Part shown: one piece after another, positions 17,402 through 64,000 of the stretch
Position numbering within the stretch: the first letter of the stretch is position 1
How the letters are laid out: the number at the start of each line of letters is the position of its first letter
Assembly (NCBI GenBank): GCA_028826165.1
Contig: JAPDFW010000091.1
Location: 221,538 to 285,537 of the forward strand
Source of the DNA: Anaeramoeba ignava BMAN
Lineage: Eukaryota > Protista > Anaeramoebae
Direction of reading: 5' to 3'
DNA: 64,000 nucleotides
The notes under the pieces: model-generated
What the model was told of the DNA's origin: nothing
Seen by the model: only the letters and a program-made list of their open reading frames with translations
Database searches by the model: none
Position numbers and translations under genes: made by a program

Positions 17402-19468
17402 ATGGGTCAAACAGAATCAACAAATAAACTAAACAGAGTTAAAGGTTATATTCCAGAAAAATATCCAAGATTAATTGAAGAAAAAGATGGGAAAGTATCT
17501 TATTCAATCAAATACGAAGAAAATGGAGAAACAATGTATCGATCTCACATGGCAAAAGATGGATTAATTGGGAATTGGAACAATTCAGTTCAAACTTTAT
17601 ATGAAAATTTAGAAGCAACAACAAAAACTTTCCCAGATCATCAACTATTTGGAACAAGAAAATATGATAAAAAAACACAAAAATATACTGATTATGAATG
17701 GAAAACTTTCAAGGAATTCAATGAGGAAAGAACTTATTTTGGAAGTGGATTAATCAATTATAAATTGAAGAAAGATGACAGAATTGGAGTTTTTGCTAAA
17801 AATAGATATGAATGGGTTCTTGCTGAACATGCTGCTTATGCTTATTCTTTTCTTTTAGTTCCTTTATATCACACATTCGGTATTCCAAATACTCGCTATA
17901 TCATCAATGATTCAGAAATCAAAACAATTATTACTGAAGCTAAATATCTTCCGAAACTCAGTCAAATTTCCAAAGACTGTCCAACATTGGAATCAATTAT
18001 TCTTCTGAATGATCCTGAAAATGAACTGGAAGAAATTATGAAAGATAATAAAGATATTGAATCCTTAAAATCAGACAATATCAAGATTTTTCTTTTTGAT
18101 GAAATTCTCGAATCGGGAAAGAAAAAACAGCATACGCATCAACCAAGCAAACCAGATGATCTTTGCTCATTGATTTACACAAGCGGAACAACTTCCCAAC
18201 CCAAAGGTGTTTGCTACACACACAAAAACATGGTTGGAACTATCACAGGCTTTTATTACATGGGATACCCATTTTCAGACAACGAATCATATTACAGTTA
18301 TCTTCCTTTGAGTCATGTATTCGAACGTTCTTTGATCAACTCAATGATTGCGCTTGGCTCTCGTGTTGGTTTTTTCAGTGGAGATAATACACGATTATTG
18401 GATGAACTTCAACTTGTTAAACCAACCATTTTCATTGGAGTTCCAAGAATATTTGCCAAAGTTTATGATAGTATCAAAGCAGGAATCAAGAAAAAAGGAA
18501 TCTTTGCACAATATCTTTTCAACGTTGCATATGAAGCAAAGAAAAAAGCGATTGAGAATGGAGAATCATATGAATTATGGGATAAATTGGTTTTCAACAA
18601 AACAAAACAACTTCTTGGAGGAAAAATTGGAATACTCATTTCGGGAAGTGCTGCTCTATTGCCTTTGCACCAGGAATTCTTCAAGGTCATTATCGACCCG
18701 CATTTTGTTCAAGGCTGGGGACTAACAGAAACAGGGTCTGGAGGAACTGTTCAAATTTATGAAGATACTCGAAACATCGGATTGGTTGGTCCGCCTCTTT
18801 GTTGCAATGATATCAAGCTAGTGAGTGTTCCTGAACTCAATTACTCAGTCAATGATTTCCCCAATCCAAGAGGTGAACTCGCAGTAAAAGGCCCAAATGT
18901 TTTCGAAGGTTATTACAATAAAAAAGAAGCAACAGATGAAGTTATGATTGATGGTTGGTTTCATACTGGTGATATCGCAGAAGCTCTTCCAAACGGCTAT
19001 TTCAAGATCGTCGACAGAAAAAAAAACATCTTCAAACTTTCTCAAGGCGAATATATTGCGCCTGATGTTCTTGAAGGCATTTATTCAAATTCTTCCTTTG
19101 TTATGCAAATTATGGTTTATGGAAATTCAAGTGAAAATTATTTGATTGGAGTTGTTGTTCCTGAAAAAGCTATTTTATTGAGCCATTTTAATGATGAAAG
19201 AAAAGAAAATGAAGATGATGATTCTTTTTTCTCCAGAATTTGTCAAGATCCTAAATTGAAAAAGTTGATTCTGGATGATATGGAAAGGCTTGGAAGAAGA
19301 GAAAACAGATTTGGATTTGAAATTGTTAGAAATTTTATTGTTGAACCAAATCCTTTTTCAGTTGAAAATGAAATGATGACAACAACAATGAAATTGAGAA
19401 GAAAAGCTATTGAGCAAAATTACAAAAAGCAACTTCAAGATTTATATTCACAAGGATTCGAAAATTAA
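17402..19468 (+). CDS. ACSL: Long-chain fatty acyl-CoA synthetase (ACSL/LACS), copy 1
   Basis: IYTSGTTSQPKG AMP-binding motif, YLPLSH, GWGLTET, GWFHTGD, DRKKNIFKLSQGEYIAP. Confidence 0.95.
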   Translation: MGQTESTNKLNRVKGYIPEKYPRLIEEKDGKVSYSIKYEENGETMYRSHMAKDGLIGNWNNSVQTLYENLEATTKTFPDHQLFGTRKYDKKTQKYTDYEWKTFKEFNEERTYFGSGLINYKLKKDDRIGVFAKNRYEWVLAEHAAYAYSFLLVPLYHTFGIPNTRYIINDSEIKTIITEAKYLPKLSQISKDCPTLESIILLNDPENELEEIMKDNKDIESLKSDNIKIFLFDEILESGKKKQHTHQPSKPDDLCSLIYTSGTTSQPKGVCYTHKNMVGTITGFYYMGYPFSDNESYYSYLPLSHVFERSLINSMIALGSRVGFFSGDNTRLLDELQLVKPTIFIGVPRIFAKVYDSIKAGIKKKGIFAQYLFNVAYEAKKKAIENGESYELWDKLVFNKTKQLLGGKIGILISGSAALLPLHQEFFKVIIDPHFVQGWGLTETGSGGTVQIYEDTRNIGLVGPPLCCNDIKLVSVPELNYSVNDFPNPRGELAVKGPNVFEGYYNKKEATDEVMIDGWFHTGDIAEALPNGYFKIVDRKKNIFKLSQGEYIAPDVLEGIYSNSSFVMQIMVYGNSSENYLIGVVVPEKAILLSHFNDERKENEDDDSFFSRICQDPKLKKLILDDMERLGRRENRFGFEIVRNFIVEPNPFSVENEMMTTTMKLRRKAIEQNYKKQLQDLYSQGFEN

Positions 19469-21420: not shown

Positions 21421-23780
21421 TTAAATTTGATTTTGGTTTTTGATTTGATTTTGTTTTTTTGATTTTGATTTTGATTTTGATTTTTGAATTTTGAATTTTG
21501 ATTTTGGTTTTGGTTTTGGTTTTGAATTTGAATTTGAATTTGAATTTGGTTTTGGTTTTGATTTTGAATTTGAATTTGAATTTGGTTTTGAATTTGGTTT
21601 TGAATTTGAATTTGAATTTGAATTTGGTTTTGGTTTTGGTTTTGAATTTGAATTTGAATTTGAATTTGAATTTGGTTTTGGTTTTGAATTTGAATTTGAA
21701 TTTGGTTTTGGTTTTGATTTTGATATTGGTTTTGAATTTGATTTTGAATTTGAATTTGATTTTGAATTTGGTTTTGAATTTGAATTTGATTTTGATTTTG
21801 GTTTTGGTTTTGAATTTGAATTTGAATTTGATTTTGATTTTGATTTTGATTTTGATTTTGATTTTGATTTTGATTTTTGATTATTAAATTTGTTAATTAA
21901 TAAATCCAATAAATTTGGATGTGTTTGATTTAATTGAAAATAATCAATTATTTTTTTTAATTTCTCGAATCATCCTTTGTGTAATTTGAATTTCATCTTT
22001 GATTTGATTTGAATAAATCCAATATTCAAATATTTGAAATGATTTATCACTTAATTCATTTTTATCTGTAACTTTATTAGATTTATCATTTTTTATAGAT
22101 AAAAACATTCTTCGATATAATTCACTTCTCATTATTAATATTAATTTAGGAAATTTATATTGTTTTTCTTTTCTTTCAATTATAAAATCTTTTTCATTTT
22201 CATTTTCATTTCCATAAATTCTTTTCATTATTTCTTCTATTGGAAAAAATAAATTAAATTCCTGTTCAATTTCAGAATATAATTTTGGATTTATTATTCT
22301 GTTTGAATAAATCATTTCAAATATTTGATTTGATTCTTTAATTGATTTTTTTGAAATAATTTCTCTAAGTTTTTCAATTTGATCCTCTTGTCCAATTATT
22401 GTTTGTAAAATTAATTTATGAGCTGAGATTATTTCTCCATTTTTTGTTTTAAATGAAATATCACAAAATTCTTTTCTTCTAAATAGTTTTATCAAATCTT
22501 CTTCAAGATTAGAAAAAGGAGAAAGAAAAGGAGAATAATAAAGAAATGAATTATTATATCCAGAAGAAACATGATAATTAGAAATATCTTGATTAAATCT
22601 TAATTTAGGAAGTTTAATTTGAATTGGAATTAATTGATTGTTTATATCTCCAGTTCCTAATTCGCCAGATGAATTATAACCAAATCCTATTAATTTTTCA
22701 TTTGAAGTTAAAATCAAAGTGTGTGCGTATCCAACAGAAAAATCAAGAATATTATCATCATTTTCAAATAAAGTTGATTTGATTTCAGTAAATTCGTAAT
22801 TATTCTCAGTTTTCCCAATGCCTTTATGTTTGTAATTTCCACATGAATAAAGTTTTTTTTTTGGATTTTGATTTTCATTTTCATTTTCAATCAACATTAT
22901 TGAATGATCGATTCCACATTGAATATCAATTATTTTGCCTTTTGGAATATTTTGGATTTTGGTTAATTTTTGGATTGTTTCTTCTTTTCTTGATTCTCCT
23001 AATCCAAGCTGGCCATTACCATTATCACCACATCCAAATAATTCTTGATTTGAATTTAAAAGAAAAACATGATCTGAAGAATTTCCTGAAAATATTTTAG
23101 AAACATTTTTCATCATTAAAATTGGTTTTTCTGTTTTTGGAAGTGTTTTAGAATCAAAACTAAGTTGATCATATCGATTTGAACCAATTCCATAAGCATT
23201 TTGATTTGAAGTTAATAAGTAAATTGAATTAGATCCAGAAACAATATCTTGAATTATTCTATCATTTGTATCTTCAATTAATGATGAAATATTGATCAAT
23301 TCATTTGGATTTTCTGGATTAATATCTTCTCCTTTGGCAAATACATTTCTTTCTTTTGTTAAAATAGCTTCACTTCTCCAACCAACAGTTACTTTTTGAA
23401 TATTTTCAATTTGGATTTTTTCAGGATTTTGTTTTGAATCTTTTAAGTATTCTATTGCTTTTCCATTTTTAAAAAGGAAAATTGTTCCAAAATTTCCTGA
23501 TGAAATTTGTTTAATTTGTTTTTCATTTTCATTTTCATTTTCATTTTCATTTTCATTTTCATTTTCATTTTCATTTTCATTTTCATTTTCATTTTCTATT
23601 TTTATTTTCATTTTCATTTTCATTTTCATTTTCATTTTCATTTTCATTTTCATTTTCATTTTCATTTTCATTTTCATTTTCATTTTCAAATTTAAATTGA
23701 ATTGGTTTTGCTATTGAATCTGGTTTATTTTTGATAAGTTTTGGCTTTTCATTTTTACCAAAAAATAAAATTTCATTCAT
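21421..23780 (-). CDS. RCC1-repeat + tandem BTB protein, copy 1; frameshifts at about 23600 (EN repeat) and about 21950; possibly a pseudogene
   Basis: RCC1 repeats (GCGDNGNGQLG, GYAHTLILT...GYNSSGELG) and BTB (FCDISF...AHKLIL; KFPKLILIMRSELYR). Paralogous to 24001-25836. Fragments 23589-23780 and 21421-21909 match the paralogue's N- and C-termini. Confidence 0.75.
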
Positions 23781-24000: not shown

Positions 24001-25836
24001 TTAATTTTGATTTTGATTATTAAATTTGTTAATTAATAAATCAATTAAATTTGGATTTGTTTGATTTAATTGAAAATAATCAACTCCAGTTTCAATTTCA
24101 TCAATTATTTCTTTTGTAATTTGAATTCCATCTTTAATTTGATTTGAATAAATCCAATATTCAAATATTTGAAATGATTTATTACTTAATTCACTATAAT
24201 CTGTAACTTTATTAGATTTATCTTCAGTTACAGATAAAAACATTCCTCGATATAATTCACTTCTCATTATTAATATTAATTTAGGAAATTTATATTGTTT
24301 TTCTTTTCTTTCAATTATAAAATCTTTTTCATTTTCATTTTCATAAATTATTTTCATTGTTTCTTCAATTTTTTCATTTAAATTTATAATTTCTTTAATT
24401 TCAGAATATAATTCTGGATTTATTATTCTGTTTGAATAAATCATTTCAAATATTTGATTAGATTCTTTAATTGATTTTTTTGAAATAATTTCTTTAAGTT
24501 TTTCAATTTGATTTTGATTTTGATTTAATCTATATTTCAATATTAATTTATGAGCTTCAATTACTTCTCCATTTTTGGTTTTAAATGAAATATCACAAAA
24601 TTCTTTTCTTTCAAATAATTTTATCAAATCTTCTTCAAGATTAGAAAAAGGAGGAGGAGAATAATAAAGAAATGAGTTATCAAATCCACAAGAAATATGA
24701 TAATTAGAAATATCTTCATTAAATCTTAATTTAGGAAGTTCAATTTGAATTGGAATTGATTGATTTTGTGTATTTCCAGTTCCTAATTGACCGAAATAAT
24801 TCCATCCAAATGCTATCACTTTTTCATTTGAAGTTAAAATCAAAGTATGAGAATAACCAACAGAAAAATCAAGAATATTATCATTTTCAAATAAAGATGA
24901 TTTGATTTCAGTAAATTCATCAGTATGTTCATCTTTGCCAAGTCCATTAGATTGATAGTTTCCACATGAATAAAGTTTTCTTTTTGGATTTTGATTTTGA
25001 TTTTGATTTTGATTTTGACTTTCTTCATCTTCAATCAACATTATTGAATGCCAATATCCACATTGAATATCAATTATTTTGCCTTTTGGAATATTTTGGA
25101 TTTGGGTTAATTTTTGGATTTTTCTTTCTTTTCTTGATTCTCCTAATCCAATCTTACCATGATAATTAGAACCACATCCAAATAATTCTTGATTTGAATT
25201 TAAAAGAAAAACATGATTTGAAGTATTTCCTGAAAATATTTTAGAAACATTTTTCATCATTAAAATTGGTTTTTTTGTTGTTTTCATTGTTTTAGAATCA
25301 ACACCAAGTTGACCATAATAATTAGAACCAATTCCGTAAACATTATGATTTGAAGTTAATAAGTAAATTGAGCGATCACCAGTAACAATATCTTGAATTA
25401 TTCTATCATTCGTATCTTCAATTAATGATGAAATATTGATAAATTGATTTGGATTATCTGGATTGATATTTTCTCCTTTGGCAAATACATTTCCTTCTGA
25501 AGTTAAAATAGCTTCATTTCCAATACAAGCAATCGCTTTTTGAATATTTTCTTCAATTTGGATTTTTTGAGGATTTTGATTTGAATTTTTTAAATATTCT
25601 ATTGCTTTTCCATTTTCAAAAAGGAAAATTGTTGAGAAATCTGCTGTTAAAATTTGTTTAATTTGTTTTTCATTTCCATTTTCATTTTCATTTTCAAATT
25701 TAAATTGAATTGGTTTTGTTATTTTATCTAATTCATTTTTTATCAGTTTTGGTGATTGATTTTTACCAAAAAATAAACAATCATTCGTTTTTTGATTAGA
25801 TTTTGAATTTGATTTTGAATTTAATTTTGAATTCAT
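24001..25836 (-). CDS. RCC1-repeat + tandem BTB protein, copy 2 (intact, 611 aa)
   Basis: GSNYYGQLG and GYSHTLILT...GWNYFGQLG RCC1 repeats; two BTB-like segments. Confidence 0.85.
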   Translation of the reverse strand: MNSKLNSKSNSKSNQKTNDCLFFGKNQSPKLIKNELDKITKPIQFKFENENENGNEKQIKQILTADFSTIFLFENGKAIEYLKNSNQNPQKIQIEENIQKAIACIGNEAILTSEGNVFAKGENINPDNPNQFINISSLIEDTNDRIIQDIVTGDRSIYLLTSNHNVYGIGSNYYGQLGVDSKTMKTTKKPILMMKNVSKIFSGNTSNHVFLLNSNQELFGCGSNYHGKIGLGESRKERKIQKLTQIQNIPKGKIIDIQCGYWHSIMLIEDEESQNQNQNQNQNPKRKLYSCGNYQSNGLGKDEHTDEFTEIKSSLFENDNILDFSVGYSHTLILTSNEKVIAFGWNYFGQLGTGNTQNQSIPIQIELPKLRFNEDISNYHISCGFDNSFLYYSPPPFSNLEEDLIKLFERKEFCDISFKTKNGEVIEAHKLILKYRLNQNQNQIEKLKEIISKKSIKESNQIFEMIYSNRIINPELYSEIKEIINLNEKIEETMKIIYENENEKDFIIERKEKQYKFPKLILIMRSELYRGMFLSVTEDKSNKVTDYSELSNKSFQIFEYWIYSNQIKDGIQITKEIIDEIETGVDYFQLNQTNPNLIDLLINKFNNQNQN

Positions 25837-36868: not shown

Positions 36869-37046
36869 AATCTAAATTGGAAAAAACTTTTTTGTTTTTT
36901 TGTTTTTTTTCCAAAATTAAATTAAAGCAAAAAAATTAAATAAAAGCAAAAAACTTTTTCTCATTTTATTTTCTTTCCAAAATTAAATAAAGCAAAAAAA
37001 TTTTTGTTTCATTTTTTTTTTCATTTTTTTTTTGACAAAATTCTTA

Positions 37047-39104
37047 ATGAATAAAAAAGATAAATTTAAAAGAGTTAAAGGTGGAATCCCACAAAAATAT
37101 CCAAGACTAGTTGAAGAAAAAGATGGGAGACCATCTTATGCATTCAAATACGAAGAAAATGGAGAAACAATTTATCGATCTCAAATGTCAAAAGATGAAT
37201 TAATTGGGATTTGGAACAATTCCATTCATACTTTATATGAAAATTTAGAAGAAACAACAAAAACTTTCCCAAATCATCAACTATTTGGAACAAGAAAATA
37301 TGATAAAAAAACACAAAAATATACTGATTATGAATGGAAAACTTACAAGGAATTCAATGAGGAAAGAACTTATTTTGGAAGTGGATTAATCAATTATAAA
37401 TTGAAGAAAGATGACAGAATTGGAGTTTTTGCTAAAAATAGATATGAATGGGTTCTTGCTGAACATGCTGCTTATGCTTATTCTTTTCTTTTAGTTCCTT
37501 TATATCACACATTTGGTATTCCAAATATTCGTTATATCATCAATGATTCAGAAATCAAAACAATTATTACTGAAGTTAAATTTCTTCCGAAACTCAGTCA
37601 AATTTCCAAAGACTGTCCAACATTGGAATCAATTATTCTTCTAAGCGATAATGAAAAGGAATTGGAAGAAATTATGAAAGATAATAAAGATATTGAATCC
37701 TTAAAATCAGACAATATCAAGATTTTTCTTTTTGATGAAATTTTCGAATCGGGAAAGAAAAAACAGCATACGCATCAACCAAGCAAACCAGATGATCTTT
37801 GCTCATTGATTTACACAAGCGGAACAACTTCCCAACCCAAAGGTGTTTGCTACACACACAAAAACATGGTTGGAGTTATTGCTGGATGCTATTACATTGG
37901 ATATCCATTTTCAGACAAGGAATCATATTACAGTTATCTTCCTTTGAGCCATATTTTTGATCGTGCAGTGATTAACGTGATGATTGCTTTTGGCTCTCGT
38001 GTTGGTTTTTTCAGTGGAGATAATACACGATTATTGGATGAACTTCAACTTGTTAAACCAACCATTTTCATTGGAGTTCCAAGAATATTTGCCAAAGTGA
38101 CTGATAGTATCAAAGCAGGAATCAAGAAAAAAGGAATTTTCACACAATATCTTTTCAACGTTGCATATGAAGCAAAGAAAAAAGCGATTGAGAATGGAGA
38201 ATCATATGAATTATGGGATAAATTGGTTTTCAACAAAACAAAACAACTTCTTGGAGGAAAAATTGCAATCATTATTTCGGGAAGTGCTCCATTACTTCCG
38301 ATCCATCAAGAATTCTTCAAGGTTTGCGTGACTCCGCATATTTATCAAGGCTGGGCAATGACAGAAACAGGATCAATAGGGACAGTCCAAATTTATGAAG
38401 AAACTCGATTGAATGGTGTTGTTGGACCGCCAATGTGCAGCAATGAAATCAAACTCGAAAGTGTTCCTGAACTCAATTACTCAGTCAATGATTTCCCTAA
38501 TCCAAGAGGTGAATTGTTAGTCCGAGGAATCAATATCTTCTCTAGTTATCACAATAAAAAAGAAGCAACAGATGAAGTTATTGTTGATGGTTGGTTCCAT
38601 AGTGGCGACATCGTAGAAGCTCTTCCAAACGGTGATTTCAGAGTTGTAGACAGAAAAAAAAACATCTTCAAACTTTCTCAAGGCGAATATATTGCGCCTG
38701 ATGTTCTTGAAGGCATTTATTCAACTTCTGAGTTCATTTTCCAAATTCTTGTTTATGGAAATTCAAATGAAGATTATTTGATTGGAATTCTTGTTCCTGA
38801 AAAAGCTGTTGTGTTGAACCATTTTAATGATGAAAGAAAAGAAAATGAAGATGATGATTCTTTTTTCTCCAGAATTTGTCATGATCCTAAATTGAAAAAT
38901 TTGATTCTGGATGATATTTCTAAACTTGGAAGAAGAGAAAACAGATTTGGATTTGAAATTGTTAGAAATTTTATTGTTGAACCAAATCCTTTTTCAGTTG
39001 AAAATGAAATGTTAACAACAACAATGAAATTAAGAAGAAAAGTTATTGAGCAAAATTACAAAAAGCAACTTCAAGATTTATATTCACAAGGATTAAAAAA
39101 TTAA
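37047..39104 (+). CDS. ACSL: Long-chain fatty acyl-CoA synthetase, copy 2 (first ATG at 37047)
   Basis: Close paralogue of 17402-19468 with the same AMP-binding motifs. Confidence 0.95.
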   Translation: MNKKDKFKRVKGGIPQKYPRLVEEKDGRPSYAFKYEENGETIYRSQMSKDELIGIWNNSIHTLYENLEETTKTFPNHQLFGTRKYDKKTQKYTDYEWKTYKEFNEERTYFGSGLINYKLKKDDRIGVFAKNRYEWVLAEHAAYAYSFLLVPLYHTFGIPNIRYIINDSEIKTIITEVKFLPKLSQISKDCPTLESIILLSDNEKELEEIMKDNKDIESLKSDNIKIFLFDEIFESGKKKQHTHQPSKPDDLCSLIYTSGTTSQPKGVCYTHKNMVGVIAGCYYIGYPFSDKESYYSYLPLSHIFDRAVINVMIAFGSRVGFFSGDNTRLLDELQLVKPTIFIGVPRIFAKVTDSIKAGIKKKGIFTQYLFNVAYEAKKKAIENGESYELWDKLVFNKTKQLLGGKIAIIISGSAPLLPIHQEFFKVCVTPHIYQGWAMTETGSIGTVQIYEETRLNGVVGPPMCSNEIKLESVPELNYSVNDFPNPRGELLVRGINIFSSYHNKKEATDEVIVDGWFHSGDIVEALPNGDFRVVDRKKNIFKLSQGEYIAPDVLEGIYSTSEFIFQILVYGNSNEDYLIGILVPEKAVVLNHFNDERKENEDDDSFFSRICHDPKLKNLILDDISKLGRRENRFGFEIVRNFIVEPNPFSVENEMLTTTMKLRRKVIEQNYKKQLQDLYSQGLKN

Positions 39105-50012: not shown

Positions 50013-53000
50013 ATGACAACAACAGAAGATATACAAGCAATACCAATAAGCACAGAAGCATTATCAAGATACATTGAATCAGTTGCAAATGCACTATTAA
50101 CATCACCTAATGATTCAACCACTAAAACAGGAAAAATAGAAAAATTAATATTTGACATGGAATCACGAGCAAAAATTGAAAAATTCGCAACAGATCCACA
50201 AATGAATGTGTTATGCATTCGACAAGTAACAACAGCACAAGATCAATTTGATTTCCATCTTGAATTAGAAGTCAGTTACACAAACGAAAACTCATCAAGC
50301 ATTGCTTTTATCAAAAGAACAGGATTGATCAAAGAAGATGCTTCTTTATCTTCACAGATTCATGTTGTGAATATTGGCGAAGGCTCTCCTTTTGAAATTA
50401 TTCATAGTTTGATTCATAATACTGTTTCTCCCTTTTTTACTTCTTTTGAATCGAAAACTCGTGAAAGAAGTGTTTCTCCTTTCCAGGATAATGTAAACTT
50501 GGCTAAAACTCAAATTATTCAAGATGCTCCGTTAGTGAAAAAGAAATTATCTGAATTAGAACTTACTCTTGTTCAATGCCAACAGAATGTTGAAGTTCCT
50601 GAAATTATTTTGACAGTTGAACCTGAAATTCGTGATTTTGTTTTGAAGGTATATATAAAAATATTTTAATTATTTTAATTATTTTAATTATTTTAAATTA
50701 TTTTAATTATTTTAATTATTTTAAATATTTTAATTATTTTAATTATTTTAAATTATTTTAAATTATTTTTAATTATTTTAAATTATTTTAAATTATTTTA
50801 ATTATTTTAATTATTTTAATTATTTTAATTATTTTAATTTTTATTTTAAATTATTTTAATTATTTTAAATTATTTTAAATATTTTAATTATTTTAAATTA
50901 TTTTAAATATTTTTATTATTTTAATTATTTTAATTATTTTAAATTATTTTAATTATTTTAAATTATTTTTATTATTTTAATTATTTTAAATTATTTTAAA
51001 TTATTTTTATAGGCAAAACAAAAAGGAATCCAAATCACTAATGAAGACCTATCTAACACTTTTGATGAATACGAATTCTTAAAAAGAGTTCAAAATGGTG
51101 TTAATAAATGGATTACAGACATACAAAAAGTAACAAGAATGAAAAGAGATGTTTCAAGTGGAAATGCACTACAAGAAATCAACTTTTGGATTTCACTCGA
51201 AAACTCATTAAAAAACGTTGAAAAACAAGTCAAAACACCAGAGGTTCAACACACACTCAATCTTCTTAAAATCAAAAAAAGACATCTCGCAAGTTTTGCA
51301 TTTGAATCTGATACAGGACTCAAACAATGCCTTAACAAAGTGGAAAATTACAACATTTTAATGAAGGAAATGCCACTAAATCAATTACAATCAGCTCAAG
51401 ACATCGATTCTCTTCGTGATGCCGTTTTGAATATTTTTTTCCATTTGAAAAAAATAAGAAATACTGATTATCCTCTTCAAAGATCAGTTGAATTTGTATT
51501 CGCCATTTTTAATGATCTTTCTTTGCAAATTGTTTCAATTCTGAAGTCAAAAGATATGCTGAATTTGCCTTTTTATGAATTCGACACCATTTCAGGAAAA
51601 TGTATTGATTTATTTCAAACATGGGATGAAAATTACAGTCATTTTAAAGATGCATTACGAGAAATTGCAAGAAGAAAAGGAGAAGAAAAATCTTTTAGAG
51701 TAAGCAAAAAAAAAACAAAAATAACGGAAAAAAACAAAATAACAGAAAAAACAAAAATATTCTGCTTGATTTTAGACACCAAATCAATCACAACCATTAA
51801 AACAAAGAATCATGCAGATCATTAAATTCAGAAGACAACACGAAGAACTGCAAAATGTGATCACCAAAATCCTTCCAAAAACAACAACAGAATTATCAGA
51901 AATCAACGCAATAGAAGAAGTTAAAGAAGCTTATGAATATGTACGAAATATCGACCCATTATTACTTACAGACGAAGGGAACGAAATGTGGAACGAGGCA
52001 ATCAAGAATTACGATACAAAAATAGACTCAATTGAAGGACACATCACAGCAAGTCTGCGAGAAAGACTTGGAAACGCTAAAAATGCAAATGAAATGTTCA
52101 AGGTGTTTAGTCAGTTCAACGTTCTGTTTTTCCGACCGAGAATCCGAGGAGCAATCCAAGAATATCAGACGCAATTAATCCATGGAGTCAAAGAAGATAT
52201 CCAAGAATTGCAAGAAAAATTGCAGCATAAATATCAACAATCAGAAACAAGCCGAATTAGTGAAATTCGTGATATTCCTTCCGTTTCAGGAGAAATCATC
52301 TGGGTTAAACAAATTAGAAACCAATTGGAAACTTATATGAATAGAATCGAAGCTGTTCTCGGCGTCGGTTGGGAAAATTACAGCGAAGGTCAAAAACTCA
52401 AAGCAGATGGAGAAAGCTTCAAGAAGGAACTCAACCCGCAGAAAATATTCGACACTTGGGTTCGTGATGTGGAAAGCAAGAAATGGGAAATCTCAGGTCC
52501 GATTTTCGCAATCCAACAAGGAAAAAAGAAAATGCATTTAAAAGTTACTTTTGGAAATGAAATCATCACACTTTTCAAAGAAGTCCGTAATCTCCAATGG
52601 CTTGGATTCCGTGTTCCCTTCTCAATCACACATATTGCGGATAATGCAGGTCAAGTTTATCCGTTTGCTGTTTCTTTGATTGAATCTATTAAAAATTATT
52701 TCCAAATCTGTCGAAGCATCGATTCTGAAATTTATCCTTTGATCGCATCACATCGCTCGCAAATTCAAGACAAAATCAAACTGGGTATTTCCTTGAGCTG
52801 GGATTCCCACAAGCTGGAAGCATATGCAACCGAGCTCGCAAATTCAATACTGTTTTTCCAAGAACAAGTTGATGGGCTTGTGAGTCGATACAGCGAAATC
52901 AAAAAATCACTTGATCAATTAAAAACCTGCGAATTCAAATTCGAGGCATTACAAGAAGTTATCCAACAAATCCAGAAAGGCATCGACGAACTGAGCTTGG

Positions 53001-56000
53001 GATCTTTTTCCAATTTAAACACTTGGGTCAATTTTCTTGATTCCAAAATTGAGCAGATTTTCATCCAAAGATTAAACGATTGCATAACAACATGGAACGA
53101 GAATTTTGATGATTTCCTAACAACAATTGAAGAGCAAAAACATCCGAAAAAATTCAAAAAAAGCTTTCATGACGAAGACGACGAACAAGAAGATCAAGAA
53201 GAGAAAAAGCTTACTCTGGAGCTCCCAACAATGACATACAGAATCAAAATCAAGAACCGCGTTGTTTATTTAGATCCACCATTTAAAGATGCACGAGAAA
53301 ATTGGATTGTTCAATTACATCAAACAATGGGGATCATCTGCAATCAAGAACGCATCAAAAGTACGCGATTCGATGTCTTCAGCACATCACAAATTTCAAT
53401 AGACGAGAAAACATACTCGCGACTCGTTGCCAAACTTCCCGAAGGATTATTATTTACAGCATATAACAAAATTGAGCTACTTTTGGATCAAATTGAGGAA
53501 TACATCAAAATTTGGTTCCAATATCAAGCATTATGGGACATGGATGTTCAGAGAGTCACACAAGAAATTGGCGACGATCTCGAGAACTGGCAAAAACTTC
53601 TTTCCGAAATCAAGCGCCACAGATCACCTTTTGATACGCGAGAAACCACTAAAAAACTCGGACCGACTCTGATTGACTATTCTCAAGTCCAAGCAAAAGT
53701 AAGCAACAAATATGACTCTTTCCACAAAGATTTCCTCAACAAATTCGGTGAGAAATTGGGTGTCTCAATGCAAAGTTTCCATGAAACAATTGAAAAAGCT
53801 CAAGAAGAACTTGAAAAACATTCTTTCGATCCAAATTCAACAGCAGACATCGTCTCCTTTGTTACCCAACTTACACAAATGAAACGGAATATGGAGGATT
53901 GGACTCGCACCGTTGATCTCCTTCATTCTAGTGAAAATACCCTTACTCGCCAACGATTCCAATTCCCAGAAGCTTGGCTTTCTTTCGAAAGGGTAAACGA
54001 CAAATGGAGTTCTTTTAACGAAATTTTCACACAAACAAACAGCAAAGTGAATGAGGAAATCCCTCTTTTGCAAAACAAAATTATCCACCAAGAAGAATTT
54101 TTCGAAACACAACTTAATGAATTTAATTTTGATTGGAAAAAAGAAAAGCCTGTTGATGGAAGAATAAAACCTAATGTCGCCATCGCTAAACTTGAGAACT
54201 TCGGTAAAAGACTCGAGAAACTTGAAGAGCAGAACGAAAAGATATCAAGTGCGAAAGAAGCTCTTGATATGGAACGATCTCACCTCCATAATTTGATCCC
54301 AATTCGTGAAGAAGTTGTTGCCTTGAAACAAGTTTGGAATGAGCTGTCTTCTGTTTGGGACAAATTAGAGGAAATCAAAGAGACTCCATGGTCAGCAGTT
54401 GTTCCCAAAAAATTAAGAGCATCTCTTGATGATTTGATTACTCAACTCAGAACCTTACCACCAAGTGTCAGGGAATACAATGCTTATGAACATTTCCATT
54501 CAATGATAAAAGGATTTTTGAAATGCAATGTGACTATTATTGATTTGAAATCAGAATCACTTAAAGAAAGACATTGGAAACAAATACAAAATAAATTGGG
54601 AGTTAAATGGGTTTTTTCTGAATTAACACTTGCTGATATCTACAATGTGGATTTAATCAAAAACGAAGCTATTTTTAAAGAAGTTATCAGAATTGCCCAA
54701 GGTGAAATGGCTCTAGAAAAATTTCTTGAACAAATGAAAGATCATTGGCAAAACTACATCCTTGATCTCGTGAATTACCAGAATAAATGTAAACTGATTA
54801 AAGGATGGGATGATTTATTTACCAAAATTTCTGATTATCTCAATTCACTTGTCGCAATGAAAAACTCTCCATTTTATAAAGTATTTGAAGAAGAAGCAAT
54901 TGCGTGGGAAGATAAATTAAACAGATTACATTTACTTTTTGATACATGGATTGATGTTCAAAGAAAATGGGTTTATTTAGAAGGAGTATTTTGTGGAAGT
55001 AGTGATATCCAACAATTATTACCTCAAGAATCATCCAAATTCAAAACTATTGATAATGATTTCCTCATCATGATGAAAAAAGTCGCCAAATCACCTCATA
55101 TTCTTGATGTTCTCAATATTCAAGGTCTTCAACACACATTGGAAAGATTATCTGATATGCTTTCCAAAGTTCAAAAGGCTCTTGGTGAATATCTAGAAAA
55201 ACAAAGATCAGCTTTCCCAAGATTTTATTTTGTTGGAGATGAAGATCTTTTGGAAATTATTGGACACAGCAAAGATGTAGTTAAAATACAAAGACATTTA
55301 AGGAAAATGTTTGCAGGAATTGCTTTACTTAAATTAAGTGATGATGAAACATCAATTATTGGGATGTTATCAAGAGAACATGAAGAAATTAACTTTCCAG
55401 ATCCTGTTAAATATAAAGAAATTTCCAAAATTCATGAATGGCTGAATATGGTTGAAAATCAAATGAGAGTTTCTTTGGGAAATTGTTTGGATATTTCATT
55501 AAGAGAATTTATTCAATTATCTTCAAAAGATGAACTTGATAAGGATCTCTTTTTAAAATGGGTTGAAACAACACCTGCTCAAATTATAGTTCTTACTATT
55601 AAAGTAATTTGGACACAAAAAGTTGAAAATGCACTTTCAAATAATAGTCAAGTTTTCCTTAAACAAACACTTGATTGGATTGGAAATATTTTAGATTTAT
55701 TAGCTTTTAATGTTCTTTTTGATTTACAACCAATTACAAGAAAGAAATATGAACATTTAATTATTGAATTAATTCATCAAAGAGATGTTATTAGAAGATT
55801 GATTCAAGCTGGTGTAAAAACCCTAAAAGATTTTGCATGGACTGAAGAAATGAGATTTTATTGGAATGAAAAGGAAAGTCATGAAACGAAATTAATGATT
55901 TCAATTGCAAATGCATCATTTGCATATGGATTTGAATATTTAGGAGTTGTTGATAAATTAGTACAAACACCACTTACAGATCGATGTTATCTTACATTAA

Positions 56001-59000
56001 CACAAGCATTAAATTTAAGATTAGGTAAATAAAATATAAAAATATTTAAATAAATTTAAAATATAAATTAATATAAATATTTTTTAATAAATAAAAAGGT
56101 GGTGCTCCTGCTGGTCCTGCTGGAACTGGTAAATCTTTAAGAAATTCAACTATAGTTTATACTCCAAATGGTCCTAAATTAAATGGTGATTTACAAATTG
56201 GTGATGAAGTTTGTACTCCTGATGGAAAATTTGCTAAAATTCTTGCTGTTTATCCTCAAGGTAAAATTGGTGTTTTTAGAGTTCATTTCAAAGATGGTGG
56301 TTTTGTTGATTGTTCTGATGATCATCTTTGGTCTGTTGATCATTCATCTAAAATTATAACAACTCAAGAAATGAGAAGATGTTTAAGAAGAGAAGAAAAA
56401 ATTTCAATAGAAACTCCTAAATATACAAATTTCAAAACTCAAAAAACCAAAATATCTCCTTATCTTTTTGGAGTTTTAATTGCAGGAAATGAAAAGATAT
56501 TAGAAAACCAAAATATCAAAATTTCCAATTCAATTAACAAACAAATTTTCCAAAATATTCAACATTTATTAAATCTTACATCTGATGGAAATTATGAAAT
56601 TTATTATGATCAAATTAATGATTATATGCCAAAACTTTCACAAAATAAATTTATTCCAAATGAATTCCAATTTAATTCCAAAGAAATAAGATTCCAATTA
56701 CTTCAAGGAATTCTTGATAGAAATGGATATTTTGATTCCAAAACAAATTCACCAATTTATTCAACATCATCTCAACAATTAGCATTTGATTTAAAGAAAT
56801 TAATTGAATCACTTGGAGGAATTTGTTACATTTCCAGAACAAAACAAAACGAGGAAATTATATTTAATTGTCGAATTGAAATTGAAAAACCAGAAAAACT
56901 TTTCACATTAAATGATAAAATTTTAATTGCTAAAAAATCTAAAAAATTTATTAATGAAAGATTTGTTTCCAAAATTGAATATATTTGCAAAGATGAATGT
57001 CAATGCATATTAATTGATCATCCAGATCATTTATTTATCACAGAAAATCATATTGTAACACATAATACAGAAACTGTTAAAGAACTTGGAAATCAATTAG
57101 GAAGATTTGTTTTGGTTTTTAATTGTGATGAAAATTTTGATTTCCAAGCAATGGGAAGAATTTTTGTTGGTCTTTGTCAATGTGGAGCTTGGGGATGTTT
57201 TGATGAATTTAATAGATTAGAAGAAAGAATGTTATCAGCAGTTTCTCAACAAATTCAAACAATTCAATTATCTTTAAAAGAACAATTAAAAGAAGTTGAA
57301 TTAATAGGAAGAAATGTTAAAATTAATCCAAATATGGGAATTTTTATTACAATGTAAAAAATATATAAAATTTAAAACACAAAAATTTATTTATTTAAAA
57401 TAAAAAATTTTTTTTTAATTTAGGAATCCTGGTTATACTGGAAGAGTTCAATTACCAGAAAATTTAAAAACATTATTTAGAACAATTTCTGTTGTTAAAC
57501 CTGATAGAGAATTAATTGCTCAAGTTATGCTTTTTTCTCAAGGTAAAAACAAAAATAAAAATATAAAAAATAAAAATATAAAATTTTAATTAATTTTAAT
57601 TAATTTTAATTTTTTAAAATAGGATTTAAAACAGCTGAAAAATTATCAGGAAAAGTTGTCCCTTTATTTAATTTATGTGCAGACCAACTTTCACCACAAA
57701 AACATTATGATTTTGGATTAAGAGCTTTAAAAAGTGTATTAGTTTCAGCAGGAAATATAAAAAGATTAGAAATTAAAGATAAAAAACAAGATGAAGTCAA
57801 AGATAAAAAACAACTTGGAGAAGAAGAAAAATCTGTAGTTATTAAAAGTATATGTGAAACAGTTATTCCAAAATTAGTTGCAGATGATATTCCATTACTA
57901 CACAGTTTATTATCAGATGTATTCCCAGGAGCACTTCCAATAGAATTAGAAATGGCAGAATTAAGAAATGTTATTTATGATATTTGCAAGAAACATTATT
58001 TAGTTCCAGGAAACAGATGGATAGAAAAAATGCTTCAATTATTTCAATTACAAAAAATTCATCATGGAGTTATGATGGTTGGTCCATCAGGAAGTGGAAA
58101 ATCAACAGCATGGAAAATTCTTTTGGAAGCACTTGAAAGAGTTGAAGGAATTAAATCACAATCATATGTTATTGATCCTAAAGCTATTACTAAAGAAGAA
58201 CTTTTCGGAGTTCTTGATCCAACAACAAGAGAATGGACTGATGGAATATTCACACATATTTTAAGGAAAATTGTTGATAATGTAAGAGGAGAATCAAATA
58301 TGAGACACTGGATTATTTTTGATGGAGATGTTGATTCTATTTGGGTTGAGAATTTAAATTCAGTTCTTGATGATAATAAAATACTTACTTTGCCTAATGG
58401 TGAAAGAGTTGCTTTGACTCCTAATGTCAGAGTAATGTTTGAAGTTCAAGACTTAAGATATGCAACACCAGCAACAGTTTCAAGATGTGGAATGGTTTGG
58501 TTCTCTGATGATACCATTTCATTAGATATGAATTTTGCTCATTATCTTGAAAAAACTAAACATGTTCCTTTATTAGAAAGTGAAAAAACTGGATTTGAAG
58601 AGCAACTTTCAGATGAAAAAGAAAAAAATCAAGAGTTATTAAGAACTCAAGAAATTTGTGTTGATGCTTTAAAAAAATATTTCGATTCAAATGGTGTTGT
58701 TATTAAAGCAATTGATTATGCTTTTAAAAAACAAAATGTAATGGATTTCACAAATCTTCGTTCATTAACATCAGCATTCTCACTTTTGGATCAAGGAATA
58801 AACCATATTCACGAATATAATTCAACTCATTCTGGTTTCCCAATGGGAAAAGAACATATCCAAAAATATGTTACAAAAAGATTACTTTTCTCATTGATTT
58901 GGGGATTTGGAGGATCAATGTCTTTACAAGATCGAGAAGAATTTGGAACATTTTTATTAAATATTTGTGATATTCAAGGACCTGAAGATAAAATGCATCC

Positions 59001-62000
59001 ATTAATTGATTTTGAAGTTCAAATTGAAGATGGAGAATGGGCTCTATGGAAAAATCGAGTTCCAAATCTTGAAATTGAAACATATATGGTTGCTAGTTCA
59101 GATGTTGTTATCCCAACTGTGGATACTTTAAGACATGAAGAAGTTGTTAATTCTTGGCTTAAAGACCATCTTCCTTTAATACTTTGTGGACCACCTGGAT
59201 CTGGTAAATCACTTAGAAATTCAGCAACAGTTTATACTCCAAATGGACCTAAAATTAATGGAAAATTAAAAATTGGAGATGTAGTTTGCACTCCTGATGG
59301 AAAAACTTCTAAAATTATTGGTATTTATCCACAAGGTAAACTTCATGTTTATCGAGTTAAATTTGAAGATGGAGATTTTGTTGATTGTTCTGCTGATCAT
59401 CTTTGGACTGTTAATGATCATTCAAATTATAAAAAACAAAAATTTGTTCTTACAACTCAACAAATTATTGATAATCTTCAAATTATCCCAACTATTCCTG
59501 AAAGAAAAGGAGCTAGATTTAGTATTGATACTCCAAAACCAATTTTATTTATGGAAAGAAATGTTCCTTTTGATCCTTATTTACTTGGAGTTTTAATTGG
59601 AAAAGAAGAAATTTATATTGGAAATGAAAATATTGAAAAACAAAATCATTATAAAGAAATACTTGAAGAATTGGGACTTTTAAATCAACCAAAAGATAAA
59701 TTATTTATTCCTCAAGATTACATTTTCAATTCTAAAGAAATTAGATTGGAAATTATTAAAGGATTATTAGATTCAAATTCATCCATTAATTATAAAGATA
59801 ACTCAATTATATTCAAATGTAAATCAACAAAATTATCACAAGATTTTAAAAAAGTTATTCAATCATTGGGAGGAATGTGTTCAATTGAAACAAATTCAAA
59901 TAAAACAAATTTATGCAAAATTTTCTATAAAACACCAAAAGAATTATTCAAATTATCCAAAAATAAAGATAAAATTGGAGAACCAAGTCCATTTGTATTT
60001 GAAAGAAGAATAATTTCTATTGAATGTGTTGGAGAAGATGAATGTACATGTATCACAATTGATCATCCAGAAGAATTATATTTAACAGATAATTTTGTTG
60101 TAACACATAACACAATGACTTTATATTCAACACTTCGATCATTACCAAATTTCGAAGTTGTAGGAATTAACTTTTCAAGTGCAACAACACCTGAATTAGT
60201 TATGAAAACATTAACACATTATTGCAAATATCAAAAAACACCAAATGGAGTTATTCTTGAGCCAACAAAATTAGATAAATGGCTTGTTATTTTCTGTGAT
60301 GAAATTAATCTTCCCAAACAAGATCGATATGGAACACAAAAAGTAATAACATTTTTAAGACAATTAGTTGAAAGAGGAGGATTTTGGAGAATATCCGATT
60401 ATCAATGGGTAACAACAAGAAGAATTCAATTTGTAGGAGCATGTAATCCACCAACAATGGTTGGTCGAGTTCCTTTATCACATCGATTCCTTAGACATTC
60501 ACCTGTAATTCTTGTTGATTATCCTTCTGCAGATTCACTCAAACAAATTTATGGAACTTTTAATAGAGCAGTTCTTAGATTGTGTCCTACTCTTCGTTCA
60601 AATGCAAGATCATTAACAGATGCAATGGTTGAATTTTATTCACTTTCTCAACAAAGATTCACACAAGATATGCAACCTCATTATGTTTATTCACCAAGAG
60701 AATTGAGTAGATGGACTCGTTCTCTCAGAGAAATTTTAAAACCTTTAGGTGGAGATCTTGATTTAGATGGACTTGTTAGAATATTTGTTCATGAAGGATT
60801 AAGATTGTTTCAAGATAGATTAGTTTATAAAGAAGAAAGAGATTGGACTGATGAACAATTAGATTCAGTTTCTAAGAAATATTTCCCAGGAATCCGAGAG
60901 AAAACTCTTGAAAGACCCATTTTATTTAGTGATTGGTTATCTAAGGATTATATGGATGTTGATAGAGAGAAATTAAGAGAACATGTTAAAGCCAGATTAA
61001 AAGTATTTTATGAAGAAGAATTGAATGTTAAATTAGTATTATTTAATGAAGCACTTGATCATATTTTAAGAATTGATCGAGTATTAAAGCAACCACAAGG
61101 TAAATTTCAAAATAGTTTCAAAATAATTTCAATTTAAGTTTTATTTTAAAATTTTAATTTTTATTTAAATTTTATTTAAATTTTATTTTAATTTTATTTA
61201 AATTTTATTTAATTTTATTTAAATTTTATTTTAATTTAAATTAAATTTTATTTTAAATTTATTTTAATTTTATTTTAATTTTATTTAATTTTATTTTTAA
61301 TTTTATTTTTAATTTTATTTTAAATTTTATTTTTAAATTTTATTTAAATTTTATTTTTAAATTTTATTTTTAAATTTTATTTAAATTTTATTTAAATTTT
61401 ATTTAAATTTTATTTTAATTTTATTTAAATTAATTTTATTTTATTTTTAATTTTAAATTTTAATTTTAAATTTTATTTAAATTTTATTTTAATTTTATTT
61501 TAATTTTATTTAAATTTTATTAAAATTTAAATTTTATTTAAATTTTAATTTTATTTTATTTTAAATTTTATTTAAATTTTATTTAAATTTTATTTAAATT
61601 TTATTTTAATTTTATTTTAATTTTATTTTAATTTTATTTAAATTTTAAATTTTATTATTTTAATTTTAGGTCATTGTTTGCTAATTGGATCAAGTGGTGC
61701 TGGTAAATGCTTAGATCCAAATACTCCTGTTATGCTTTATAATGGAAAATCAAAATTGGCTAAAAATATTAAAGTTAATGATCAACTTATGGGTGATGAT
61801 TCAAATCCAAGAAATGTTTTAAGTATTTGTAAAGGAAGAGAAAATATGTATCGAATAAAACAATCAAATGGTGATGAATATATTGTTAATGAACCTCATA
61901 TTCTTTCTTTGAAATTAACAATCAATTCAATTCTTAATCATGAAAAAGATCTTAAAAGATATTCAGTTCTTTATTTTGAAAATCATTGTGAGAAAATTAA

Positions 62001-64000
62001 ATATTTCAACTACGGTAAAAAGAAAATTATCTGAATCTAAATCTTTTTACTTCAAGTTTAAATGCTCTTCATTTTCGCAAAACAAATTTATAAATCAAAT
62101 TTTGGAAAGTAAAAATATAATCATAAAGGAGATGTTATTGATATTGCTGTTATTGATTATATTAAGAAACCTCAAATTTGGAAAAAAAATATCATGTTGG
62201 ATTTAAAGTTCCAATTCAATTCAATTCAAATCCAAATATTCCAATAGATCCTTATAATTTGGGGAATTTATCTTGGAATGGAAAACAATAAATCAGATGA
62301 AGAAATTAAAATTCCTCAATGTTATAAAATTAATGATCGTGAAACAAGATTAAATATTTTGGCAGGATTAATTGATTCAAATGATGAAATAATTTATGAT
62401 GAAATGAATAATTGTTATAATATTCCAATTAATGAAAATCAAGAAGAATTATATAAAGATATCAATTCATTTCACGTTCACTTGGATTTTTTCTTGTGAA
62501 AAAGAAAAGAAAAATTATAATATCAGGAAATGAAATTGAAGAAATTCCTGTTAGAAATCCAAATAAGAAAATTAAAAATCAAAATAAAACACAAAATTCA
62601 AATTTAGAAAGTGAAATTGAAGTTGAATTAATTGGAGAAGGAGATTATTGTGGATTTGAAATTGATGGGAATAGAAGATTTTTACTTGGAGATTTCACAG
62701 TTACACATAATACAGTTTTATCAAGATTTGTTGCTTGGATCAATGGATTATCAGTTTTCCAAATCAAAATTAGTAGAAAATACACATTATTTGATTTTGA
62801 TGAAGATCTTAGAGTTGTTATGAAAAGAGCGGGAATTAAAGGAGAAAAAATATGTTTCATTTTTGATGAAAGTAATATTCTTGAAACATCATTTTTGGAA
62901 AGAATGAATGCATTATTGGCAAGTGGAGAAGTACCAGGTTTATTTGAAGGAGATGAAATGGGAGCTTTAATGAATCAATGCAGAGAAGCAGCTCAATCTG
63001 ATGGAGCAATTCTTGATACAAATGATGAATTATTTAATTGGTTTACAAAACAAGTTCAAAACAATTTACATATTGTTTTCACAATGAATCCAGCAACAGG
63101 AGATTTTTCAAATCGAGCAGCAACTTCACCAGCTTTGTTTAACAGATGTGTACTTGATTGGTTTGGAGATTGGTCACCATCAGCAATGTATCAAGTTGGA
63201 TATGAATTCACAAAAGATCTTAATTTGGAAAATCCAAACTATTTCCCACCAATTAGCTTCCCACATGAATTTGATGCAAAAGATAATTTCCCAGATTCAC
63301 CTAATCATAGAGAATCAATTGTTAGTTCTTTTGTTACAATCCATAAAAGTGTTGAAAAATCATCAAAGAAATTGCAAAAAACTCAAGGAAGAAGTAATTA
63401 TGTTACACCAAGACATTATTTGGATTTCATTACACATTATCTGAATCTTTTCAATGAAAAAAGAAGTTCTCTTGAAGAACAACAACATCATTTGGATGTT
63501 GGATTGAAAAAGATGAAAGAAAAGAAACTGAAGAAGTTGCGAAATTACAACTTAAATTGAAACAAAAAGAAAAAGAACTTGAATCCAAAAATGAAGAAGC
63601 AGAAGCCAAATTGAAACAAATGGTTAAAGATCAACAAGAAGCAGAAGCAAAGAGAAAGGCCTCACTTGAAATCCAAACAAAATTGGAAGAGCAAAACAAG
63701 GAAATTGCAGCACAACAAAAAATTGCAATGGATGATCTTTCAAAAGCAGAACCTGCAGTTTTAGCAGCAAAGAAAAGTGTTAACAGTATCAAGAAAAGTC
63801 ATTTAGAAGAATTAAAATCCATGTCAAATCCACCTGAATTAGTTAAAATGACTCTTCAAGCAGTTTCACAATTTTTGGGAAGTAAAGAGACTTCATGGGG
63901 AGAAATTCGAAGATTATTAAAAAGAAAAGATGATTTTTTATTCAAGTGTTAATTTTGATACCAATTCAATGACATCTAAAAGTGATTTCAAGGCAATTCC
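50013..64000 (+). CDS. DYNC1H1: Cytoplasmic dynein 1 heavy chain (partial, continues past the window). Exons 50013-50648, 51013-51699, 51776-56024, 56099-57353, 57424-57542, 57623-61099, 61670->64000; contains three inteins
   Basis: Cytoplasmic-dynein tail motifs ([37 protein letters not shown]), linker [20 protein letters not shown]1 GPAGTGK/T...[11 protein letters not shown]2 [11 protein letters not shown]3 GPPGSGK/T, AAA4 GSSGAGK/T, and the start of the stalk coil. All six GT-AG joins keep the frame. Apparent frameshifts after about 62020. Confidence 0.97.
56134..57066 (+). mobile_element. Intein 1 (311 aa) in dynein AAA1 Walker A; Ser1, class 3 WCT signature, degenerate LAGLIDADG endonuclease
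   Basis: GPAGTGK|[13 protein letters not shown]...DCSDDHLW...LQGILDRNG...ECQCILID...IVTHN|TETVK. Removal restores GPAGTGKTETVK. 933 nt, open frame. Confidence 0.96.
59209..60111 (+). mobile_element. Intein 2 (301 aa) in dynein AAA3 Walker A; Ser1, class 3 WCT signature, degenerate LAGLIDADG
   Basis: GPPGSGK|[13 protein letters not shown]...DCSADHLW...IKGLLDSNS...ECTCITID...VVTHN|TMTL. Removal restores GPPGSGKTMTL. 903 nt, open frame. Confidence 0.96.
61708..62711 (+). mobile_element. Intein 3 (about 335 aa) in dynein AAA4 Walker A; Cys1 class 1, LAGLIDADG remnant, several apparent frameshifts
   Basis: GSSGAGK|[13 protein letters not shown]...[11 protein letters not shown]...VNEPHIL...LAGLIDSND...[22 protein letters not shown]|TVLSRF. 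Removal restores GAGKTVLSRF. 1004 nt, not a multiple of 3 as assembled. Confidence 0.93.

Follow-up and report, generated by a model that had tools for sequence, protein, structure and literature searches.

Recently, 103 inteins were reported in Anaeramoeba ignava (Gallot-Lavallee et al., 2023, PNAS, PMC10710043). According to that report, one dynein paralogue of this species hosts three inteins, and inteins also spread to more than one site of a single protein (Prp8 b/d, ASC1S3). One group in its Fig. 6B, 'cluster 1', forms a single clade with a class 3 signature, an atypical N-terminus, phage relatives and insertion sites in the P-loops of unrelated proteins. The prototype of the class 3 inteins is found in the DnaB protein of mycobacteriophage Bethlehem, and Ser1 was present in 3 of 37 inteins with the W-C-T (WCT) triad (Tori et al., 2010, PMC2807308). 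In class 3 chemistry, the Cys of block F attacks first (PMC2807308, PMC4031507).

In this study, two inteins are described that interrupt the AAA1 and AAA3 modules of an A. ignava cytoplasmic dynein heavy chain. These inteins resemble the class 3 prototype in their W(B:12)-C(F:4)-T(G:5) residues, Thr+1 and P-loop insertion, but differ from it in having Ser1, nuclear eukaryotic hosts and a decayed endonuclease. They belong to a family at eight genomic sites, which shares with 'cluster 1' the organism, the P-loop insertion, the class 3 signature, the atypical N-terminus, the phage relatives and the grouping of inteins from both species (A. ignava and Anaeramoeba flamelloides) in one clade. The main text of PMC10710043, on the other hand, does not mention the AAA1/AAA3 pair or the phage-like intein P0160 discussed below. 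From these features we infer that the dynein family is 'cluster 1', and the pair has been described already in kind, and almost certainly also in instance. The spread of inteins to non-allelic sites does occur and is unusual; as reported there, it has been published for A. ignava, for dynein and for the P-loop intein family. The additions made here are small: a negative test of the claim that the two inteins are sisters, and a candidate donor with an intact endonuclease. The most probable reading, at roughly three in four, is that both dynein inteins descend from one phage-acquired P-loop intein that spread by non-allelic homing, without a direct copy between AAA1 and AAA3 being singled out.

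The dynein gene and its inteins

The window, meaning the whole stretch of 64,000 nucleotides that was analysed, is the end of contig C92. The dynein gene was recognized by its Pfam matches (DHC_N1, DHC_N2, AAA_6, AAA_5, AAA_7 and AAA_8) and by protein KAJ5071176, whose start lies at position 50013. This protein is titled 'intein-containing dynein heavy chain precursor [Anaeramoeba ignava]' at NCBI, and its model includes both the AAA1 and the AAA3 intein; a protein that has the AAA1 intein at 100% falls into one cluster with it. The features are as follows:

50013-64000, + strand: cytoplasmic dynein heavy chain gene, multi-exon, truncated at the end of contig C92
56025-56098, + strand: GT-AG spliceosomal intron of 74 nt, with its 3' end 35 nt ahead of the AAA1 intein
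56113-56133, + strand: AAA1 Walker A N-extein GPAGTGK; Thr+1 at 57067 completes Walker A
56134-57066, + strand: AAA1 intein, 311 aa, with Ser1, a W66-C291-T309 class 3 triad, a His-Asn end, Thr+1 and a degenerate LAGLIDADG domain
58081-58104, + strand: AAA2 P-loop GPSGSGK-S, without an intein
59188-59208, + strand: AAA3 Walker A N-extein GPPGSGK; Thr+1 at 60112 completes Walker A
59209-60111, + strand: AAA3 intein, 301 aa, with Ser1, a W66-C281-T299 class 3 triad, a His-Asn end, Thr+1 and a degenerate LAGLIDADG domain
61708-62711, + strand: AAA4 intein with Cys1, from another family (Hom_end-associated Hint), frameshifted on C92 and intact (about 336 aa) on contigs C35 and C113

Both inteins are in frame, and each splits the Walker A motif between Lys and Thr. 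The junctions (slashes mark the intein ends) are GPAGTGK/SLRNS...VTHN/TETVK in AAA1 and GPPGSGK/SLRNS...VTHN/TMTLY in AAA3. The in-frame insertion, the HN/T ends and the HINT fold identify both as inteins.

The arrangement is found on three contigs. Mis-assembly is unlikely, since the dynein copies on C35 and C113 carry the same two inteins in the same order. In addition, the A. ignava transcriptome-derived protein P0005 from EukProt contains the AAA1 intein at 100%, together with the 15-residue junction that results from splicing of the 56025-56098 intron, and stops short of AAA3. In five Logan runs from two studies, 73-85% of the words of the window are present. Indel errors at the end of C92 could raise the thought that one intein is merely a duplicate produced by the assembly, but this has next to no likelihood: the two inteins differ at 58% of their residues, both reading frames are open, and neither the three contigs nor the transcriptome protein fit such an artefact.

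Other observations concern the surroundings of the inteins. Spliceosomal introns lie close to two intein sites of the family, at 35 nt 5' of AAA1 and apparently a few bases 5' of the intein in a Brr2-like helicase (L011:1200-1500). Elsewhere, the window contains near-duplicate acyl-CoA synthetase genes (17402-19468 and 37032-39104), a tandem pair of RCC1-BTB genes (21944-23689 and 24001-25836), and genes for actin (157), a PfkB kinase (7388), an RA-RA-PH protein (9691) and an ankyrin protein (42658).

Splicing signature and endonuclease decay

The structure model of the AAA1 intein (pLDDT 93) shows a LAGLIDADG domain inserted into a HINT domain and matches TliVMA, PI-SceI and mini-inteins. When aligned to 6riz and 6rix, the class 3 triad of W B:12, C F:4 and T G:5 falls on the W, C and T residues listed above for each intein, and the +1 residue, Ser or Thr in class 3, is Thr in both. 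The original definition from 2010 included the lack of an N-terminal nucleophile, which does not apply to these inteins as both begin with Ser. Later, this nucleophile was described as 'not required' in class 3 (PMC5222942). Because Ser1 is present and the N-terminal nucleophile is only 'not required' in the later description, both are termed class 3-type by signature. Judged from their residues, class 3 splicing chemistry is likely in both inteins, and Ser1 could serve as well.

The catalytic acidic residues of LAGLIDADG blocks C and E are gone in all eight A. ignava inteins (GDG to AGN or GKE; DTDG to DRNG or DSNS). The same Asp positions are retained in the phage relatives, including P0160. 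Pfam LAGLIDADG_3 remains under its cut-off for the dynein inteins, which are 40-50 residues shorter than P0160. Because of the lost Asp residues and the shorter length, the AAA1 and AAA3 inteins are probably no longer mobile.

A family of P-loop inteins

A search of the genome (42.8 Mb, 147 contigs) revealed inteins with Ser1 and W-C-T at eight P-loop sites, all eight with the form GK/S...HN/T. These sites are dynein AAA1, dynein AAA3, Prp16, a DHX37-like helicase, a Rad51 paralogue, a Brr2-like helicase and two kinesins; the names of Prp16, Rad51 and one kinesin come from NCBI, while the DHX37-like, Brr2-like and second kinesin hosts were read from flanking motifs. The A. flamelloides kinesin KAJ3442198 is a ninth family member. 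All nine contain W(B:12), T(G:5) and a Cys in block F, and alignment matches these residues to those of class 3 in 6riz, 6rix and 6bs8. Among dynein-length proteins, no further dynein with an AAA1/AAA3-type intein was found, and none in A. flamelloides, which is a weak negative.

Outside Anaeramoeba, there are thousands of relatives, mostly phage-like (5917 representatives at E<=1e-30; 355 viral stretches). Their hosts include PhoH, DnaB, RecA, SNF2 and terminase. The preliminary description started from the premise that inteins usually have only distant relatives at other insertion sites. This premise fails for the P-loop family, in which close relatives at different sites are normal, because 193 of the 245 external members examined follow GK in unrelated hosts.

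Comparison of the AAA1 and AAA3 inteins

In BLASTP, the AAA1 and AAA3 inteins are identical at 137 of 328 positions (42%, 238 bits, E 5e-82). The preliminary description had counted 49 identities in the first 69 residues, and a recount gives exactly this number; also, the C-termini and the endonuclease remnants line up as it claimed. Its view that the hosts diverged anciently was confirmed as well, with the AAA1 and AAA3 modules minus their inteins aligning over only 24 residues (21 bits). Over the same 69 residues, Prp16 shares 51 identities with AAA1 and 52 with AAA3, and the A. flamelloides kinesin intein shares 47 with AAA3.

At the DNA level, the first 69 codons of AAA1 and AAA3 are identical at 170 of 207 positions, the highest value of the pairs tested. 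The flanks of the two target sites are identical at 22 of 30 positions, above other non-paralogous pairs; the flank score of the Brr2-like site is not meaningful, since its upstream flank is an intron. Among sites with the same residue, 95 of 128 use identical codons versus 87 expected from the inteins' own codon usage (p=0.057), or p 0.016, uncorrected, with the usage of the dynein exteins. These observations could point to a direct intragenic jump, in which one dynein intein templated the other long ago and the signal was blurred by divergence. The genome searches are divided on this: the top match of the AAA1 intein is AAA3, but the top match of the AAA3 intein is Prp16 (252 bits, versus 225 bits for AAA1). 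Moreover, other intein pairs give similar p-values in the codon test, and the DNA similarity is largely accounted for by the shared extreme codon bias (GC3 0.06-0.08). Synonymous sites between the two inteins are close to saturation, and no sign of recent copying was found at the DNA level. The near-saturation, combined with an endonuclease without its catalytic Asp residues, suggests an old spread.

Phylogeny of the Anaeramoeba inteins

The trees, from which the frameshifted duplicates on C103 (DHX37-like), C68 (second Prp16) and C113 were omitted, place the Anaeramoeba inteins in one clade (UFBoot 94-100 at full length; 99 with nine inteins including KAJ3442198), with P0160 as the sister of the whole clade (UFBoot 92-94). 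A grouping of AAA1 with this nearest phage intein was rejected by the AU test (p=0.016). The two dynein inteins are thus related non-allelic inteins that go back to one acquisition, as had been proposed, rather than each belonging with an external allele of its own.

Within the clade, which is star-like, branching is poorly supported. AAA1 and AAA3 group together in 2, 31 and 2 of 1000 ultrafast bootstraps (full length, splicing domain and middle, respectively), in 1 and 0 of 1000 when the A. flamelloides intein is added, and in 0 under the C20 mixture model. This grouping is never the maximum-likelihood topology, and its bootstrap support is 0-3% over six analyses. Prp16 is at least as close to each of the two as they are to one another. 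Monophyly of the pair was not rejected by the AU test (p 0.0997 at full length, 0.245 for the splicing domain and 0.102 with A. flamelloides). The sisterhood asserted in the preliminary description is, on these alignments, unsupported rather than disproved.

The ectopic jump over about 3 kb that was built on this sisterhood is not supported either, as AAA1 and AAA3 are two of eight genomic family sites without an exclusive pairing. The AU results leave a direct jump standing; the bootstrap values and the affinity of AAA3 to Prp16 make it unlikely. The second option offered at the time, invasion of both sites by one donor, lies nearer to the evidence than the jump.

Origin and spread

Under the preferred reading of one phage-acquired intein, a class 3-type intein that targeted P-loops would have passed from a phage to Anaeramoeba, probably before the lineages of A. 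ignava and A. flamelloides separated. This timing is loose because no firm grouping joins the A. flamelloides intein to the kinesin inteins of A. ignava. As long as the LAGLIDADG endonuclease worked, the intein may have moved by non-allelic homing to the G-x-G-K/T codons common to unrelated P-loop NTPases, and so have reached all eight host sites named above. The AAA1 and AAA3 insertions would be two events of this one spread, in either order, and the endonucleases would have decayed afterwards. Persistence could be explained by the need to splice out in order to rebuild the Lys-Thr of Walker A, most likely by attack of the block F Cys followed by Thr+1.

A pool of related phage inteins could also have invaded several P-loops one after another, each time independently and with no movement within the genome. 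The phage family is huge and promiscuous among P-loops, and the star-like clade would suit such a history. This is nevertheless very improbable, given that the nine Anaeramoeba inteins form their clade without any sampled phage intein and that AAA1 with P0160 was rejected. Also, phages do not infect eukaryotes, which would make repeated delivery less parsimonious.

A phage-like relative and a possible entry site

P0160 is an intein of 351 aa in a phage-like PhoH protein, whose gene lies at L161:8001-9770 on a 181-kb metagenome contig. When viral contigs were searched by DNA pattern and by single proteins, no nearer relative was found. P0160 is 39% identical to the AAA1 intein (236 bits, compared with 238 bits for AAA3 and AAA1). 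Like the AAA1 intein, it has Ser1, the WCT triad and a GPAGTGK/SLRNS junction (IGPAGTGK/SLRNSEIVYT in P0160; AGPAGTGK, followed by the intein, in AAA1). Unlike the dynein inteins, it retains both LAGLIDADG Asp motifs, has its greater length and resides in a phage PhoH host.

A refinement of the preferred reading is that a PhoH intein homed into AAA1, both sites reading GPAGTGK/T, and that AAA1 or its descendants later seeded AAA3 and the other sites. The shared junction is uncommon, with only 8 of 245 external sites reading GPAGTGK; P0160 is nearest to AAA1, and AAA1 branches first in four trees (UFBoot 47-65). However, this support is weak and slow evolution of AAA1 could account for it, and the DNA of the PhoH and AAA1 sites is identical at 16 of 30 positions only. 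In addition, a kinesin site and no dynein site is shared with A. flamelloides, as reported in PMC10710043, which suggests that kinesin is an old site. AAA1 as the entry point is therefore a tentative and rather doubtful proposal. A more specific sequence of events, with entry into the nucleus via AAA1, a direct jump to AAA3 and then spread to other P-loop NTPases, is improbable. If true, it would identify both the point of entry for a whole family of eukaryotic inteins and a donor lineage whose endonuclease is intact, and the target range would be testable. The link to P0160 is a lead absent from the main text of PMC10710043, and AAA1 may be the entry site. With P0160, one could examine whether a single enzyme is able to cleave several unrelated sequences that encode Walker A.

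Copies of the dynein gene

Among the dynein copies, the inteins differ by seven distinct changes, all seven synonymous, which would fit inteins that continue to fold and splice. The paralogues KAJ5071176 (C92) and KAJ5078912 (C35), compared over 51812-63500 of the window and G000:C35:449000-469000, have tails of about 55-70% protein identity and motor domains of about 95%. Each of the two inteins, in AAA1 and in AAA3, shows 2 base differences between the paralogues, both synonymous, and the motor exteins differ by 53 non-synonymous and 23 synonymous changes in 1157 codons, clustered in mostly non-synonymous patches. This looks like gene conversion between old dynein paralogues that homogenises the motor and the inteins, with polishing artefacts as the alternative.

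The AAA4 intein is frameshifted on C92 and open on C35 and C113, and further indels occur near 63520-63950, which suggests that the assembly of C92 is faulty at its end. P0005 tracks the C92 tail, diverges at about residues 1200-1800 and continues with unrelated sequence after AAA2; it is probably a chimeric transcript assembly. Frameshifted duplicates were also observed for the DHX37-like (G000:C103:385-1282), Prp16 (C68:374472-375423) and dynein AAA1 (C113:182675-183611) inteins. Two of these sit at contig ends, and the three are thus errors or pseudogenes.
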